Below are positions 8,046 through 39,491 of a DNA stretch of 40,308 nt, piece by piece. The stretch comes from Octopus bimaculoides (lineage: Eukaryota), in contig NC_068981.1 of the NCBI RefSeq assembly GCF_001194135.2, positions 7,573,727 through 7,614,034 on the forward strand, read 5' to 3'. The notes under the pieces are model-generated. The model did no database searches, was not told the DNA's origin, and worked only from the letters and a program-made list of their open reading frames with translations. A program made the translations under genes and the position numbers. Within the stretch, counting starts at the first letter, position 1, and every line of letters begins with the position of its first letter.

Positions 8046-8250
8046 TTAGACCCGGAATAAAGATTTATACAACGAAAAGAAGGAACCAATTGATTCTTTG
8101 AGACCAAGATGCAATGCTAAGTTCTTTGCAGAGCCAGAATATTAATTAGAACACATTGTTAGACCTGGAATAAAGATTTGTACAACGAAAAGAAGGAACC
8201 AATTAGTTCTTTGAGACCAAGATGCAATGCTGCATTCTTTGCAGAGCCAG
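8046..8250. repeat. Direct duplication of ~92 bp (8046-8137 vs 8159-8250) covering the C-terminal coding segment of CAP copy 1
   Basis: ttagacc(c/t)ggaataaagattt(a/g)tacaacgaaaagaaggaaccaatt..gcagagccag occurs twice, 113 bp apart. Confidence 0.95.
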
Positions 8251-9047
8251 GGGCACGAAGGGCGAAGATGGGCGTAGTGACAATAATCCACGGGTATTTT
8301 TTTGCATTTAATACTTATGTCAGAAAACGAACAGTTTAGTAAACAATTGTGGCCATACGTATGACTATGTTCATAGCAACTACAAGAACAGTCTTCGACA
8401 TTTAGAATTCCAAAATTGTAACAAGCATTATGACCACAATCCCTTAAACTTCTGGTTTTATTGCAGCGTCTGTATGGTTCTTCCCCGTTTATGTTCCCTG
8501 CAGGAGCATAATTACAAACATAGAACGTGCCAATATTCGAACAAAGAGAGGCACCACAACCAATTAAAATCGATGTCGCCCACACTAACTGTGTGTATTG
8601 TGCTGTATTCTTCGAATGCTTTCTACCATATTTAAAATCCTTGCCTTCAGAACGCCAATAACGTATGACATCATACCATTTGGAAAATTTTGCAGCTATA
8701 TTTTGACCAACATTATATTTCAAAGGTATACTTCTGTTCAGAATTTCGTCATTTTTCAGCACACAATTATCCGACCATTTCTGTGCTAAATAGGCCAGCT
8801 CATAATCCCAGTGCATTCTGAACATATTACAGGATGGTGGTTGAACTTTGACTCGAATAACATTGTGCAAAGCGATTATGATAGACTTCTGCACATCAGT
8901 CACAATCAACGATTCCTTCAACTTAGGCGACTTTTCTAAACATGCTGTGTGACCTCCTCTAATCCGAAATTGCTCGGAGCAATATGCTTCCGAAAGGCCG
9001 CTATGGGACATCAACAGTAAAATGAAATATATTGTTGCCAACACCAT
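8142..9047 (-). CDS. CAP/CRISP-superfamily cysteine-rich secretory protein, copy 1 (301 aa; signal peptide, CAP, EGF-like, ShKT-like, hydrophobic C-tail); CDS intronless
   Basis: LHN.IR, MFRMHWDYELAYLAQKWSDNC, GQNIA, W.SE, YTQLVWATSILIGCG, YVCNYAPAGN, CYNFG..CSCSC, CPWLCKEC. The track start at 9059 is TTG; AAAAATGG gives an ATG at 9047. Confidence 0.92.
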   Translation of the reverse strand: MVLATIYFILLLMSHSGLSEAYCSEQFRIRGGHTACLEKSPKLKESLIVTDVQKSIIIALHNVIRVKVQPPSCNMFRMHWDYELAYLAQKWSDNCVLKNDEILNRSIPLKYNVGQNIAAKFSKWYDVIRYWRSEGKDFKYGRKHSKNTAQYTQLVWATSILIGCGASLCSNIGTFYVCNYAPAGNINGEEPYRRCNKTRSLRDCGHNACYNFGILNVEDCSCSCYEHSHTYGHNCLLNCSFSDISIKCKKIPVDYCHYAHLRPSCPWLCKECSIASWSQRTNWFLLFVVQIFIPGLTMCSN

Positions 9048-9934
9048 TTTTATTTTCAAATTTTCCGAAATTTACTTTTTTCAGAAAACATTTCTCTTCT
9101 TACTGTAATTTGTGAGATTCCACAGTACCTTCTGCTGTTACGGAATTCCGAAACGAAATATTATTTTAATATTTTCTTACTTGTCTTTCAAGTTTAACTT
9201 AAATTTGAACTTGGTGAAATTGGCAACGCTATATTCGGGGTTTGAAGATGGTCACGCGAGATTCATTGCTTCGTGCAAAAGAAATTCTTTACATTGAAGC
9301 AAGCAGCGTTCATTTTGCACACATTTGCACCAATTCCTTCATCACCGTTGGATAGAGTCAAGAAAAATAAATTGTGGAGAACTTAACAATATTTTGATTC
9401 CTCGCCTGATTTTTTCTGCAAAGAATTATTAAATCATGCTTATTCAGAGAAACAAATATGCCGTGTGTAAATGAAGGGAATTAATTAATTAGACAAAAGA
9501 AACAAAGAAACGCCGAACGTTAAAAACTGAAAATCTAAGGAACTTACAGGAATTATTCAAAGTCTGGCACAATACAGCTGTTTGCTTCGAAGCTGTTTCA
9601 CCAAAAGCGAGGTATTTAATTCTATTCAATGATTTCATCAGAAAGGCTACTAAGAGTTGAAACGCCCCAATGCATTCATATTCACTAGCCCCACCACCAC
9701 TAGCACCACCACAACTACTACTAACACCGCCGCCTCCACCACTTTTTAGTCTACATCTTTCTTAGTTAGACCTTGTCTACTGAGAAATTTTAGCCTCAGC
9801 TACAACATTCGTGTTGGGACCATCACTGATACTCTTTCTATCAAACCGGAAAAAAATGAAAGGCAAAGTCGACCTCTTTCATCCTTCCGGGATCAATAAA
9901 AGAAACAGCATCAGTAGAGCCTTGAGGTCGATAT

Positions 9935-36747: not shown

Positions 36748-37015
36748 ATGTAGTGAAGGCGGTATAGCCTTAATAGTTAGGATATTCAGTGCACGGTGGT
36801 AAGTTCGATTCCTGGAGTTCAATTTCCGCCGGCGCGTTGTGTCCTTTCATAGTGCCCCAGTCCACTCGGCTGGTAAACATGAGTTGTACCTATGATTTAA
36901 AGGGCTAATCTTTCTACAATCTTTGTCACGGTGAGTCTCCCCGAGAACTACGTTAAGGGCACGCGTGTGTGTGGAGTACTCAGCCACTTACACGTTGATT
37001 CCATGACCGGGTGTC
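36748..37015 (+). mobile_element. tRNA-derived SINE, third family, decayed
   Basis: tagccttaatagttagg (A-box-like), aagttcgattcc/gagttcaatttcc (B-box-like), gcgttgtgtcctt, ..gagaactacgttaagggc. Confidence 0.6.
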
Positions 37016-38564
37016 AGTTTATGTATGTATTGTGTGTATACACATTAATTCATACATACATACATACATTCATTCATACATACATACATTCATTCATACA
37101 TATATATATCTATATCCATACACTCATACATACATACATACATACATACATATATACAGACATAAATACATACATACTAAATCCCAAAGATGGAGCCTTG
37201 TATCATTGTTGGAAACTGGCTTCCTCCTCACTGGAAAATTTGAAGAAACATACATACATTTAAATATATATGAGCATGTCTAGAGATGTAATTATATGCG
37301 TGAGAATACATACAAAACATAGAAATCTTCACATACATACATACATACATACATACATACANNNNNNNNNNNNNNNNNNNNNNNNNNNNNNNNNNNNNNN
37401 NNNNNNNNNNNNNNNNNNNNNNNNNNNNNNNNNNNNNNNNNNNNNNNNNNNNNNNNNNNNNNNNNNNNNNNNNNNNNNNNNNNNNNNNNNNNNNNNNNNN
37501 NNNNNNNNNNNNNNNNNNNNNNNNNNNNNNNNNNNNNNNNNNNNNNNNNNNNNNNNNNNNNNNNNNNNNNNNNNNNNNNNNNNNNNNNNNNNNNNNNNNN
37601 NNNNNNNNNNNNNNNNNNNNNNNNNNNNNNNNNNNNNNNNNNNNNNNNNNNNNNNNNNNNNNNNNNNNNNNNNNNNNNNNNNNNNNNNNNNNNNNNNNNN
37701 NNNNNNNNNNNNNNNNNNNNNNNNNNNNNNNNNNNNNNNNNNNNNNNNNNNNNNNNNNNNNNNNNNNNNNNNNNNNNNNNNNNNNNNNNNNNNNNNNNNN
37801 NNNNNNNNNNNNNNNNNNNNNNNNNNNNNNNNNNNNNNNNNNNNNNNNNNNNNNNNNNNNNNNNNNNNNNNNNNNNNNNNNNNNNNNNNNNNNNNNNNNN
37901 NNNNNNNNNNNNNNNNNNNNNNNNNNNNNNNNNNNNNNNNNNNNNNNNNNNNNNNNNNNNNNNNNNNNNNNNNNNNNNNNNNNNNNNNNNNNNNNNNNNN
38001 NNNNNNNNNNNNNNNNNNNNNNNNNNNNNNNNNNNNNNNNNNNNNNNNNNNNNNNNNNNNNNNNNNNNNNNNNNNNNNNNNNNNNNNNNNNNNNNNNNNN
38101 NNNNNNNNNNNNNNNNNNNNNNNNNNNNNNNNNNNNNNNNNNNNNNNNNNNNNNNNNNNNNNNNNNNNNNNNNAGAGAGAGAGAGAGAGAGAAAGAAAAT
38201 AGAGGCTTGACATATAATTGTTTATGCTTATTGAAATGAAACATGTAAAATATAACTGTCAACATTCTCACTGGTTATTGTACATCCATAATGCGATGGC
38301 ATAATGGTGAGGAGGATTGTTGTTAATGTTCTTCAAAGAATAGGTAATTACCTCCCTTTTCATAATTGTTTTTTTTATTTATGCACTTGATTCATTTGGT
38401 CTATTTATATTCAGTCGTTTCATTGCATCGCTTCCTTGTCACTGCATATAGAATCCGAATATATACTTGCTTTTTCTTGGCATTTTTTATGGATTACGGC
38501 CGAGCAGAACATGAGTGTCATTGGTAGTATACGAAATGGGACGATCCAAATTCCTGACCAATAT

Positions 38565-39491
38565 TTAAATACTGCGAAGCGAAAGACTAACGAACATGAG
38601 CAAGGTTGTGCATCTTAATCTTAATGGTTGTCTGATGAAAGAGAAACCATCACTTTTATTTCTCGCTGAGATGGGTTTAACGTTACATTCGTTGCACATC
38701 CAGGGACATTTAAATTTTGTCTCGAACTTTGCACATATTGATTTCTTTGCAGCATCGCACGGGTCGGATGGATCGGGAAATGTACAGTTCAGGGAACAGT
38801 CCTTGCTAATTATATGTAATTCGTCATAACATGTACACTTACACGTATCGGGGTCCAGGTGACCACCATTGTAACAAATTTCGTTATGGCATTTAAAAAT
38901 TTTTATCTCGTCTTTACATTCTTTATAAATGGGTTCTTTCGGATCTTCAACAGGAGCGTAGTTGCAGACCCGAAAATCACCGAGATTGGAACAGATTGAC
39001 ACCGCACAGCCAATGTGATGAGATGTGCTGCGTATCATCTTCTTATATGAATCTGCAACACCTTCTCGTGGATCAGAATTATTAAATGATAACATTTCTG
39101 TATGCCATGCTCTCAATAATCCATCCCAGGTGGTGTATCCCATGCCAATGTTCTGATCAACATTATATCTACCAGGTACCTTATTATATTCTCTCTTAAT
39201 CTTCTTAAATTCACAGTTGTTTGCCCATTGCTGTGCAAGGAAAGCAAGTTCTACATTCCAGTATAATGGAAACATGCTGCATGGTTTAGGATTAACGTCT
39301 TCCCGGTAGTGGTTATGTATAGTCAATATTATGTACTGTTCAGCTGCACTAACTTCCACTGCTTCTACACACTTTGGCGACTTTTTTAAACAAGCCACAT
39401 GGTCAGGGTTAAATCTATACCTTTCAGGGCATTTATCAACTTTATCGCACAAGCCCACTATAAGCAGTAAATGTATCCACATTAAATGCAT
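38565..39491 (-). CDS. CAP/CRISP-like copy 4 (308 aa), intact, CDS intronless
   Basis: MHLMWIHLLLIVGLC signal; IHNHYRE, WNVELAFLAQQWANNC, DQNIG, WHTE, IGCAVSIC, RVCNYAP, CYNGG..CKCTC, ShKT-like C-x8-C-x7-C-x8-C-x3-C-x2-C, hydrophobic tail. The track start at 39686 is GTG. Confidence 0.92.
   Translation of the reverse strand: MHLMWIHLLLIVGLCDKVDKCPERYRFNPDHVACLKKSPKCVEAVEVSAAEQYIILTIHNHYREDVNPKPCSMFPLYWNVELAFLAQQWANNCEFKKIKREYNKVPGRYNVDQNIGMGYTTWDGLLRAWHTEMLSFNNSDPREGVADSYKKMIRSTSHHIGCAVSICSNLGDFRVCNYAPVEDPKEPIYKECKDEIKIFKCHNEICYNGGHLDPDTCKCTCYDELHIISKDCSLNCTFPDPSDPCDAAKKSICAKFETKFKCPWMCNECNVKPISARNKSDGFSFIRQPLRLRCTTLLMFVSLSLRSI

Follow-up and report, generated by a model that had tools for sequence, protein, structure and literature searches.

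An intronless CAP gene cluster in Octopus bimaculoides: probable retroposed founder, local tandem duplication and exchange between paralogues

Based on the analysis of a 40,308-nucleotide stretch of Octopus bimaculoides chromosome CM046601.1 (assembly GCA_001194135.2), hereafter the window, we suggest that its cluster of CAP genes was founded by a retroposed gene and then grew by local tandem duplication, with the later death of one copy (c2), exchange of sequence between two others (c3 and c4) and products that are probably displayed at the cell surface. We give this reading a probability of about 70%. It is preferred because the copies are intronless, their relatives are intron-rich and c1, c3 and c4 form a clade. 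Retrocopying with subsequent local duplication is an ordinary route of gene-family growth.

Organization of the CAP gene cluster

When the six-frame translation of the window was searched with tblastn and an HMM of the family, exactly four CAP-homologous units (c1–c4) were recovered, all on the minus strand, with no further CAP relics. A fifth member in the same orientation, degenerate and with most of its cysteines gone, is located 9.9 kb outside the window. The co-oriented minus-strand cluster of the original prediction was thus upheld, with its size raised from four to at least five members. Its division into two intact, one gapped and one dead copy also held: c1 and c4 are intact ORFs, c3 is gapped and c2 is frameshifted. 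The ATG-to-ATG spacings of 7.0, 11.4 and 12.0 kb, which include N-runs of merely estimated length, match the expected ~7–12 kb. DNA homology is confined to modules of 1.35–1.75 kb (c2, 15069–16438; c3, 26238–27951; c4, 38212–39959), in agreement with the anticipated gene-sized modules of ~1.3–1.8 kb.

It should be noted that c1–c4 are spread over five contigs with N-runs between them, so the order, orientation and spacing of the copies rest on scaffolding. One uninterrupted contig (7679–15456) carries c1 together with the 3′ piece of c2, the only such pairing, and c4 stands on an isolated 2.1-kb contig (38174–40308) between two gaps. Besides the gaps within c2 and c3, there are four assembly gaps, all within spacers.

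Intact copies c1 and c4

The c1 gene (8142..9047, minus strand) is an intact single ORF of 301 aa from its own ATG, comprising a signal peptide, a CAP domain (Pfam E 1.3e-15; family HMM E 7e-100), a Cys-rich EGF-like module, an ShK/ICR-like module and a hydrophobic C-terminal tail. It resembles the other copies at the protein level only (36%). With c4 it has 20 Cys in common and 32% identity at the remaining aligned positions (pS 0.77, saturated). Given this saturation of synonymous sites, c1 separated from the other copies long ago. An exact-sequence look-up of c1 returned no match. Just downstream, the last ~36 codons and the stop of c1 are tandemly duplicated (8029..8137, minus strand; a 113-bp unit, 90% identical), as found by blastn (8026–8137 versus 8139–8250), TRF (period 113, 2 copies) and tblastn, in which residues 271–305 recur at 8136–8032.

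The c4 gene (38565..39491, minus strand) is likewise a single ORF, with 308 aa from the signal-peptide ATG; the public annotation gives a single-exon CDS of 346 aa from an upstream in-frame ATG, and an exact-sequence look-up matched in the genome only. No window copy has coding introns, which bears out the predicted intronless state of the coding sequences for both intact genes.

Pseudogene c2 and gapped copy c3

The c2 pseudogene (15177..16081, minus strand) consists of three in-frame pieces, all placed by alignment A2 and matched by the HMM. Owing to a 32-bp insertion (16019–16050), the reading frame terminates after codon 21; a further insertion of 4 bp (15744–15747) shifts the frame a second time, and two near-invariant Trp residues are replaced. 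The copy also holds an assembly gap (15457–15551, 95 N) whose flanks are out of frame as written. However, the independent database protein P0053 (UniParc UPI00078A3B10) bridges this gap from flank to flank via 42 codons and implies 123 nt, a length at which the flanks are in frame. The in-frame reading of P0053 shows that the two flanks are continuous and that the assembly misstates the length of the gap. Whatever the gap contains, c2 is dead owing to its two frameshifting insertions. Its upstream flank (16082..16438, minus strand) is ~88–89% identical to those of both c3 and c4, and dN/dS between c2 and c3 is about 1.0–1.1.

The c3 gene (26575..27483, minus strand; ORFs, tblastn, alignment A2 and family HMM) is broken by an assembly gap (26807–27027) that hides ~70 codons. 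Both flanks of the gap are open and in the same frame as written. Where the assembly writes 221 N, comparison with c2 gives a missing length of 209 nt and comparison with c4 one of 218 nt, both of which agree with the written length modulo 3. No record bridging this gap was found, and the two RefSeq models splice out of c3 at its border. The c3 CDS is 88.6% identical to c2 in the 5′ half and 96% in the 3′ part, compared with 70–72% to c4.

Sequence exchange between c3 and c4

The 5′ tract of c3, formed by the upstream region and the first ~11 codons (27452..27945, minus strand), is 99.2% identical to that of c4 (39460..39953, minus strand) over about 495 bp, with 4 mismatches (A2 columns 48–576), after which identity drops sharply to 58–84%. 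Within the c3 tract, a TATAAA motif occurs some 240 nt before the ATG. On the other side, the 3′ flank of c3 (26200..26520, minus strand), which contains AATAAA followed by an A12 run, matches the c4 3′ flank (38212..38510, minus strand) at about 95% identity from ~60 nt past the stop (alignment A5); the visible homology ends at the gap 37362–38173, which truncates the c4 flank. Beside these near-identical flanks, the c3/c4 CDS shows dS of about 0.5 and dN/dS of about 0.65–0.7.

The two genes are thus a mosaic, and because flanks 95–99% identical surround coding sequences of only 70% identity, the paralogues have exchanged sequence. The near-identical flanks on the 5′ and 3′ sides of the divergent coding blocks go back to one or more events of non-allelic gene conversion or recombination, whose direction and number we infer. 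The predicted birth-and-death evolution therefore stands with respect to gene death, as seen in c2, but pure birth-and-death does not account for such flanks.

Protein architecture and likely activity

Of the predicted CAP-EGF-ShKT architecture, the CAP domain was confirmed and was the only domain detected by Pfam, while no "EGF" or "ShKT" matches were obtained in an HMM search of 34 family members. The latter labels rest on a conserved cysteine pattern, invariant across 29–34 family sequences, on the published classification and on non-significant fold matches. Each intact copy encodes a signal peptide, CAP, an EGF-like disulfide module, an ShK/CRISP-ICR-like module and a hydrophobic tail. 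The AlphaFold model of c4 (mean pLDDT 84) gave snake CRISPs as the best Foldseek matches (E about 1e-12), with GLIPR1 among the structural matches.

None of the copies retains the CAP1 histidine, which belongs to the usual metal-binding tetrad. In c2 and c4, the CAP1 Trp and CAP2 Gly-Asn have been lost too; the corresponding part of c3 is hidden by the assembly gap. The disulfide scaffold, in turn, is strictly retained. The likely function, judged from the sequence, is therefore binding and not metal-dependent activity. It should be noted that dN/dS values of 0.65–1.1 and eroded CAP motifs are also expected of decaying copies.

All copies carry a C-terminal tail that in hydropathy is similar to a GPI-anchor signal, weaker in c4, where it contains arginines. 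Such tails argue against free venom proteins, and the products may more probably be displayed at the cell surface. Mammalian GLIPR1L1 and PI16 are GPI-anchored CAP proteins in which a CAP domain is followed by a C-terminal hydrophobic attachment signal. The octopus proteins share both features and would be anchored similarly, but EGF-like and ShK-like modules are absent from the mammalian ones.

Vertebrate and snake-venom CRISPs (pseudecin, natrin, stecrisp, triflin) are the best sequence and fold matches to the octopus CAP domain, and the C-terminal CxxxC...CPxxCxxC is weakly alignable with the CRISP ion-channel-regulatory (ShK-like) domain. However, CAP-domain identity is only 23–27%, the octopus proteins add an EGF-like module between CAP and the ShK-like part as well as a hydrophobic C-terminal tail, and the Pfam Crisp model had no match by HMM search.

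Relatives and origin of the cluster

At E<=1e-30, 121 representative relatives were collected, and many of the best ones span CAP and both Cys-rich modules. They come from Octopus vulgaris, Sepia, Haliotis, Ostrea ("Mr30-like"), Argopecten, Mactra, Batillaria, Solemya, Lingula and Watersipora. In terms of protein architecture, the family is therefore found across lophotrochozoans and not, as had been proposed, in a single lineage. Molluscan CAP-ShK type II proteins, the clade of Conus Mr30 and Tex31, are ancestral to molluscs and consist of a signal peptide, CAP and a Cys-rich C-terminus with an EGF-like motif and a ShKT-like one that is hard to recognise (Gerdol et al. 2019, PMC6409789). The octopus copies have the same layout, and database relatives are named "Mr30-like" and "CRISP". 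The expected Tex31/Mr30 type thus agrees with the published class and the names of relatives, by which the octopus genes would be assigned to type II; our tree covered relatives other than the Conus proteins. The octopus copies differ in lacking coding introns and the CAP motif residues listed above. They also differ in ending in a hydrophobic tail, a feature that many non-Conus relatives share.

In the NJ tree, c1, c3 and c4 form a clade (84% bootstrap) with P0007 as its sister (80%); the branches united in this clade are long, and long-branch attraction may partly account for it. Within the cluster, c4 diverged from the line leading to c2 and c3 at dS of about 0.5, and c2 and c3 diverged from each other at dS of about 0.09.

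The Sepia pharaonis relative has 11 coding introns (12 exons over 76 kb; cDNA-to-genome alignment, 100% identical), and that of Batillaria has about 10 (~11 exons over 9.9 kb). In this comparison, the EGF-like and ShK-like modules are one exon each. The relatives in O. vulgaris and O. sinensis are genes spanning 287–295 kb. Because at least eight intron positions are common to a cephalopod (Sepia) and a gastropod (Batillaria), the ancestor was intron-rich. We suggest that its mRNA was reverse-transcribed and inserted, with ~10 coding introns lost at once, and that the retrocopy was then tandem-duplicated several times, as the module structure and the tree indicate. The predicted retro-derived, locally amplified founder is thus supported by the shared intron positions of its relatives and by the 84% clade. 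Of the hallmarks of a retrocopy, only intron loss weighs decisively; the AATAAA of c3 with its trailing A12 run is no more than a hint, and neither target-site duplications nor an O. bimaculoides parent gene came to light. Intronless nicotinic-receptor expansions of lophotrochozoans reportedly followed the same route, from a retrogene founder to local tandem amplification. The likeness lies in the intronless founder and tandem growth; the protein family is different, and the octopus array is small (5 copies), with sequence exchange between paralogues and a dead copy.

Alternative explanations

An ordinary DNA-level tandem array, whose introns were lost gradually or never present, is unlikely. 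Tandem duplication is clearly at work in the cluster, and a poly(A) tail or target-site duplication is not demonstrable; however, the coinciding Sepia and Batillaria introns imply an intron-rich ancestor, and every copy, including the anciently diverged c1, lacks all introns, which one event fits better than ~10 independent losses. It is improbable that the genes code for CRISP toxins secreted in venom or saliva and evolving under diversifying selection, with the conserved flanks as a sign of venom-type accelerated evolution. The flanks are indeed far better conserved than the CDS, one RefSeq model is named "cysteine-rich venom protein", the nearest solved structures are snake-venom CRISPs, and relatives are salivary-gland-specific in Cumia and high in the Conus venom duct (PMC6409789). 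However, synonymous sites have diverged too (dS about 0.5) and dN/dS is <1, so the contrast reflects homogenised flanks and not fast amino-acid change. Type II genes are mantle-specific in oyster, so venom is not the default role, and the hydrophobic tails point to membrane anchoring instead of free, venom-type secretion.

Copy number, order and even the identical c3/c4 flanks could partly reflect the fragmented assembly, with c2 and c3 as alleles or a mis-scaffolded single locus and the c3/c4 flanks mis-joined or gap-filled. The dispersal over five contigs, the isolation of c4 and the wrong length of the c2 gap favour this, as does the breakage of c2 and c3 (88–96% identical) at nearly the same gene position, typical of assemblers at repeats. 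Nevertheless, an artefact of this kind is improbable as well. Between c2 and c3 there are 4–12% divergence and indels of 32, 4 and 38 bp, and their downstream flanks are unrelated, which looks like too much difference for alleles; the c3/c4 tracts still differ at 4 positions around coding blocks of only 70% identity; and c1 and the 3′ piece of c2 share one contig. It is very improbable that a single large multi-CAP gene contains the units as exons or segments, which is what the two RefSeq models here imply: XP_014774225.1 (P0170) joins the N-terminal half of c3, a c2 piece and c1, and XP_052830109.1 (P0183) joins the same half of c3 to c1. Multi-unit relatives do exist, with six units in O. 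vulgaris P0002 and two in Haliotis and Ostrea proteins. However, each unit in the window starts with an ATG and signal peptide of its own, contains all the domains and closes with a hydrophobic tail and a stop, whereas the internal units of P0002 lack signal peptide and tail. Both models are chimeras of paralogues that exit c3 precisely where it meets the assembly gap, take their acceptor from within the frameshifting insertion of c2 and encode between one and a half and two and a half CAP domains, and c4 is annotated alone as a single-exon gene. A retroposed founder with local duplication thus remains the preferred reading.

Spacer content

The spacers contain microsatellites and LINE reverse-transcriptase fragments, in accordance with the transposable elements expected there. 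One LINE-type fragment lies below c1 (4800..6083, plus strand; Pfam RVT_1 E 2.9e-12) and is split by the gap 5233–5406. A second one of the same family was found by blastn and as an ORF in the c3–c4 spacer (29598..30802, minus strand), where its part 29669–30802 is 66–68% identical by blastn to the first fragment on the opposite strand.

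Organization of the CAP gene cluster

Four CAP-homologous units, all on the minus strand, were found in the window (39% G+C, eight N-runs) by tblastn with two long ORFs as queries and by searching the six-frame translation with a family HMM; neither search found a fifth unit or relic inside the window. Copies c1 (8142–9047) and c4 (38565–39491) are intact ORFs of 301 and 308 codons, respectively, and c3 (26575–27483) is open on either side of an assembly gap (26807–27027). Copy c2 (15177–16081) is broken by two frameshifting insertions. The first, of 32 bp (16019–16050), lies in the signal-peptide region and leads to a stop after codon 21, and the second, of 4 bp (15744–15747), causes a further frameshift. 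In addition, c2 has substitutions at two near-invariant tryptophans. This copy was never joined or repaired: its three pieces were analysed separately, and substitution statistics were taken from alignment columns only.

These results confirm the original prediction of four same-strand paralogues about 7–12 kb apart, two intact, one gapped and one dead. The ATG-to-ATG distances are 7.0, 11.4 and 12.0 kb and rest on scaffolding. The cluster is spread over five contigs; c1 and the 3′ piece of c2 are the only parts found together on one contig, and c4 lies on a 2.1-kb contig island; the order and orientation of the copies likewise depend on scaffolding. DNA homology among c2–c4 is restricted to modules of 1.35–1.75 kb, in agreement with the gene-sized modules predicted, and c1 is related to the other copies at the protein level only (36%).

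Two of the gaps interrupt coding sequence, and the remaining ones fall in spacers. As written (15457–15551, 95 N), the c2 gap leaves its flanking pieces out of frame with each other. The protein P0053 (UniParc UPI00078A3B10), an exact match to both flanks, crosses the gap by 42 codons (123 nt), and the flanks are in frame once the gap is 123 nt; the N-run is thus underestimated. The c3 gap flanks are in one frame, and the 209–218 nt predicted by homology to be missing compare with 221 N, a length equal modulo 3. No record spans the c3 gap, and both RefSeq models of the locus exit c3 at its edge.

The locus record around c4 (L001) extends 9.3 kb beyond the window on the c4 side and contains a further member, c5. 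It consists of one ORF of 310 codons in the orientation of the other copies, at L001 255–1187 (plus strand of that record), equivalent to window coordinates 48419–49351 on the minus strand, and it matches the family HMM at E 7e-15. The frame is open, the N-terminus still resembles a signal peptide and the hydrophobic tail is strong, but most cysteines are lost, as are the CAP motifs. This copy is absent from the gene calls of the sequence collection. On the opposite side, no additional copy was found across 7.8 kb beyond the window edge. The predicted number of four therefore holds for the window and not for the cluster, which has a fifth member outside it.

CAP domain and C-terminal modules

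The Pfam CAP model (PF00188) matched c1 (E 1.3e-15) and c4 (E 6.4e-15), both passing the curated cut-off, as well as all 34 of the 34 aligned family members; Pfam found no other domain in the cluster proteins. The predicted structure of c4 (mean pLDDT 84) has the alpha-beta-alpha sandwich fold, and its Foldseek matches, at E 1e-12 to 1e-6, were CRISPs, Ves v 5, GLIPR1 and PR-1. Among solved structures, snake-venom CRISPs, GLIPR1 and insect antigen-5 proteins come nearest in both sequence and fold. The CAP3 motif (HNxxR) is retained in the window copies, and CAP4 reads GQN in c1 and the family and DQN or VQN in c2–c4. The CAP1 histidine is gone in all four copies (AQYTQLVW in c1, DSYKKMIR in c4, DSYRNM in c2 and c3). 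The CAP1 Trp and the CAP2 Gly-Asn are also lost in c2, where this region was read from P0053, and in c4; in c3, the remainder of CAP1 and the whole of CAP2 lie inside the assembly gap. Membership in the CAP fold is upheld, but the canonical metal site (His/Glu tetrad) is not.

An exhaustive HMMER search with a c1 + c4 profile returned 121 representatives at E ≤ 1e-30, and many of the best ones were matched over their full length. The representative set was clustered at 50% identity, a level that would conceal orthologues of c1 or c4 from other Octopus species; for scale, the O. bimaculoides relative P0016 is 90.7% identical to an O. vulgaris unit. Word-indexed protein searches were insensitive: c4 as a query returned itself only, the O. 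vulgaris six-unit family protein P0002 returned 6, and the family profile returned 12 with known relatives missed, so that the absence of octopod orthologues is not to be deduced from them. The relatives came from Octopus vulgaris, Sepia pharaonis, Haliotis, Ostrea, Argopecten, Mactra, Batillaria, Solemya, one brachiopod and one bryozoan, and the Ostrea relative was named "cysteine-rich venom protein Mr30-like" by its source. In the full-length relatives, C-x4-C-xNGG-x6-C-x-C-x-C-x10-C-xxN-C comes after the CAP domain, and C-x7/8-C-x8-C-P-x2-C-x2-C comes next. The cysteine pattern is unvarying in 29 relatives, and most full-length relatives have a hydrophobic C-terminus.

The original prediction had called the two C-terminal modules EGF and ShKT. 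These labels agree with the molluscan CAP-ShK type II class, which has EGF-like motifs and poorly recognisable ShKT motifs and whose clade includes Conus Mr30 and Tex31 (PMC6409789), but they were not borne out by Pfam, PDB-profile or significant Foldseek matches. For a placement of the cluster with Mr30 and Tex31 themselves, that clade and the "Mr30-like" source name offer indirect support. The EGF, ShK and Crisp Pfam models had no match in the 34 members at E ≤ 1, and a C-terminal profile compared with the PDB returned nothing relevant. When the C-terminal 91 residues were modelled separately (mean pLDDT 78), Foldseek gave non-significant matches only (E ≥ 1.4), nearly all of them EGF domains together with one ShK homologue. 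The model of the vertebrate-type CRISP hinge/ICR (PF08562) did not match, and the last ~40 residues of the window protein aligned with the ICR of pseudecin and stecrisp in phmmer at sub-threshold level only. Both the protein family and its mode of evolution are already known.

Intron loss and origin of the cluster

The window copies have no coding introns. A transcript contig of the Sepia pharaonis relative P0157 ("CRISP") is 100% identical to 12 genomic exons over 76 kb, which gives 11 coding introns, and the Batillaria member has ~11 exons in 9.9 kb (~10 introns). In a single alignment, at least 8 intron positions coincide between Sepia and Batillaria, and in both species the EGF-like and the ShK-like modules are each encoded by a single exon. 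Since at least 8 positions are common to a cephalopod and a gastropod, the ancestral gene was intron-rich. None of these introns is found in any cluster copy, not even in c1, which diverged anciently. Relatives in O. vulgaris and O. sinensis have spans of 287–295 kb. The O. bimaculoides relatives P0016 and P0171 carry the name "latisemin-like".

The neighbour-joining tree unites c1, c3 and c4 in one clade (84%), with P0007, a cephalopod-type transcript, as its sister (80%). The window clade and P0007 fall inside a weakly supported group (52%) whose identified members are all cephalopod. P0007/P0151, the nearest relative of the cluster and a candidate for the parental-type gene, is 308 aa long, is 41–42% identical to c1 and resembles it in architecture and tail. 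Its sequences occur in transcript-sized contigs of ~2.3 kb from 41 sequencing runs (Logan L005–L010: SRR8281676, SRR8281663, SRR7369732 and others).

Traces of the insertion itself are faint. In c3, an A12 run lies 2 nt past AATAAA, and c4 and c2 have weaker A-rich runs; the c3–c4 homology extends beyond the A12. No direct repeats were seen flanking the unit. As the event is old, loss of the poly(A) remnant and of target-site duplications is expected. One retroposition followed by local duplication is the simplest account. The proposed retro-derived founder with local amplification is largely right, given 0 introns against 11 and ~10 at shared positions and the 84% clade. The cluster would be a clean example of gene birth, in which retroposition of an intron-rich lophotrochozoan gene with ~10 conserved introns founded a small tandem family. 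All the later fates, namely retention, death, degeneration and exchange among paralogues, are on display in this family inside 50 kb. It involves no new mechanism and leaves the general view unchanged.

Divergence and exchange among the copies

Copies c1 and c4 have 20 cysteines in common and are 32% identical at the other aligned positions, with pS 0.77 and saturated synonymous sites. The cysteines were kept despite this saturation, which argues that purifying selection acted on the scaffold over most of this interval. Between c4 and c3, dS is ~0.46–0.51 and dN/dS ~0.65–0.7. Between c2 and c3, dS is ~0.09 and dN/dS ~1.0–1.1, which fits drift of at least one of them.

Unexpectedly, the similarity of c3 and c4 forms a mosaic. 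A 5′ tract of ~495 bp that begins 463 bp upstream and ends near codon 12 is 99.2% identical (4 mismatches), and the 3′ flank is ~95% identical over at least 320 bp from ~60 nt past the stop. Between these flanks the two copies are 70–72% identical. The upstream region of c2 is 88–89% identical to c3 and to c4. As the flanks are 10–50 times less diverged than synonymous sites, constraint alone is insufficient, and the pattern requires one or more events of non-allelic gene conversion or recombination. The predicted birth-and-death evolution is supported by the dead c2, but it was not pure, since the flank identity of c3 and c4 shows sequence exchange.

Two histories fit this mosaic. Sequence of the c2/c3 lineage may have overwritten the flanks of c4, for which two tracts are needed. 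Alternatively, c4 may be a recent duplicate of c3 whose coding block was replaced by an older c4-type donor; a single tract suffices here, although no such donor was seen. The short-read assembly may also have contributed. The idea that one unequal crossover of c4 with c2 produced c3 was discarded, because it would yield the reverse arrangement, with c2 upstream sequence and c4 coding sequence. Recent duplication of c3 and c4 with conversion of c3 by c2 does not serve as a full account either, as c2 and c3 differ by 11% in their 5′ half, against 0.8% for the c3/c4 5′ tract.

Annotation of the locus

Both RefSeq models of this locus (8142–27600) are chimeras of paralogues. XP_014774225.1 (586 aa) joins the N-terminal half of c3, a fragment of c2 and c1, and XP_052830109.1 (490 aa, "cysteine-rich venom protein") joins the N-terminal half of c3 and c1. 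The parts are joined where the assembly has a gap and within an insertion that shifts the frame, and the chimeras result from the assembly gaps. Counts of O. bimaculoides "venom CRISP" genes based on these models are consequently off.

The public model of c4 begins at an upstream in-frame ATG, whereas the family alignment sets the signal peptide at the second ATG (39491). The 111 bases 5′ of this ATG are open in frame (MNSKRIW...) in c4 (39492–39602), c3 (27484–27594) and c2, and c4 was therefore annotated as 346 aa. The extension is probably 5′UTR.

Hydrophobic tails and the venom label

The window proteins carry a signal peptide at the N-terminus and a hydrophobic C-terminus that runs to the very end, with small residues before it. 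The best 15-residue Kyte-Doolittle means of the tails are 2.2 (c1), 2.8 (c2 and c3), 1.5 (c4, the weakest of the window copies) and 3.05 (c5). Ser/Asn-rich spacers precede the tails, a feature common to the relatives. From their sequence, the tails resemble a GPI-attachment signal, which suggests surface attachment.

Exact-product look-ups returned no transcript contigs, and the sole record of the protein encoded by 38565–39602 is on CM046601.1 of GCA_001194135.2. A cephalopod-toxin preprint contained nothing on CAP genes. Oyster type II genes are mantle-specific. A venom role is not indicated by the present evidence, and the name "venom" is derived from homology; the hydrophobic tails and eroded CAP motifs caution against applying this label by name alone. 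We consider it improbable, if worth stating, that the cluster is an octopod-specific subfamily of GPI-anchored surface CAP proteins that has abandoned the metal site, with coding blocks kept different and promoters and UTRs homogenised by gene conversion. If true, this would mean shared regulation with a diversified ectodomain, much as in surface families that serve recognition or chemosensation, and use in a tissue specific to the octopus, for example suckers or skin.

Neighbouring genes and spacers

No RNA families or tRNAs were found in the window. The spacers contain microsatellites and LINE reverse-transcriptase fragments. Two fragments, at 4800–6083 (plus strand) and 29598–30802 (minus strand), belong to the same LINE family and are 66–68% identical. 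LINE ORF2-like ORFs at 12874–13377 (minus strand) and 22807–23208 (plus strand) had no Pfam match. At 8029–8250, a 113-bp tandem duplication (two copies, 90% identical) spans the final ~36 codons of c1 together with its stop, and an extra copy of the tail-coding segment thus lies in the c1 3′ flank. A single-exon ORF of 168 aa (2160–2666, minus strand), also annotated as one exon, encodes a full-length calcineurin B (E 1e-73 to human CNB1) that starts with MGN (for N-myristoylation); it shares the strand of c1 and lies 5.5 kb downstream of it.
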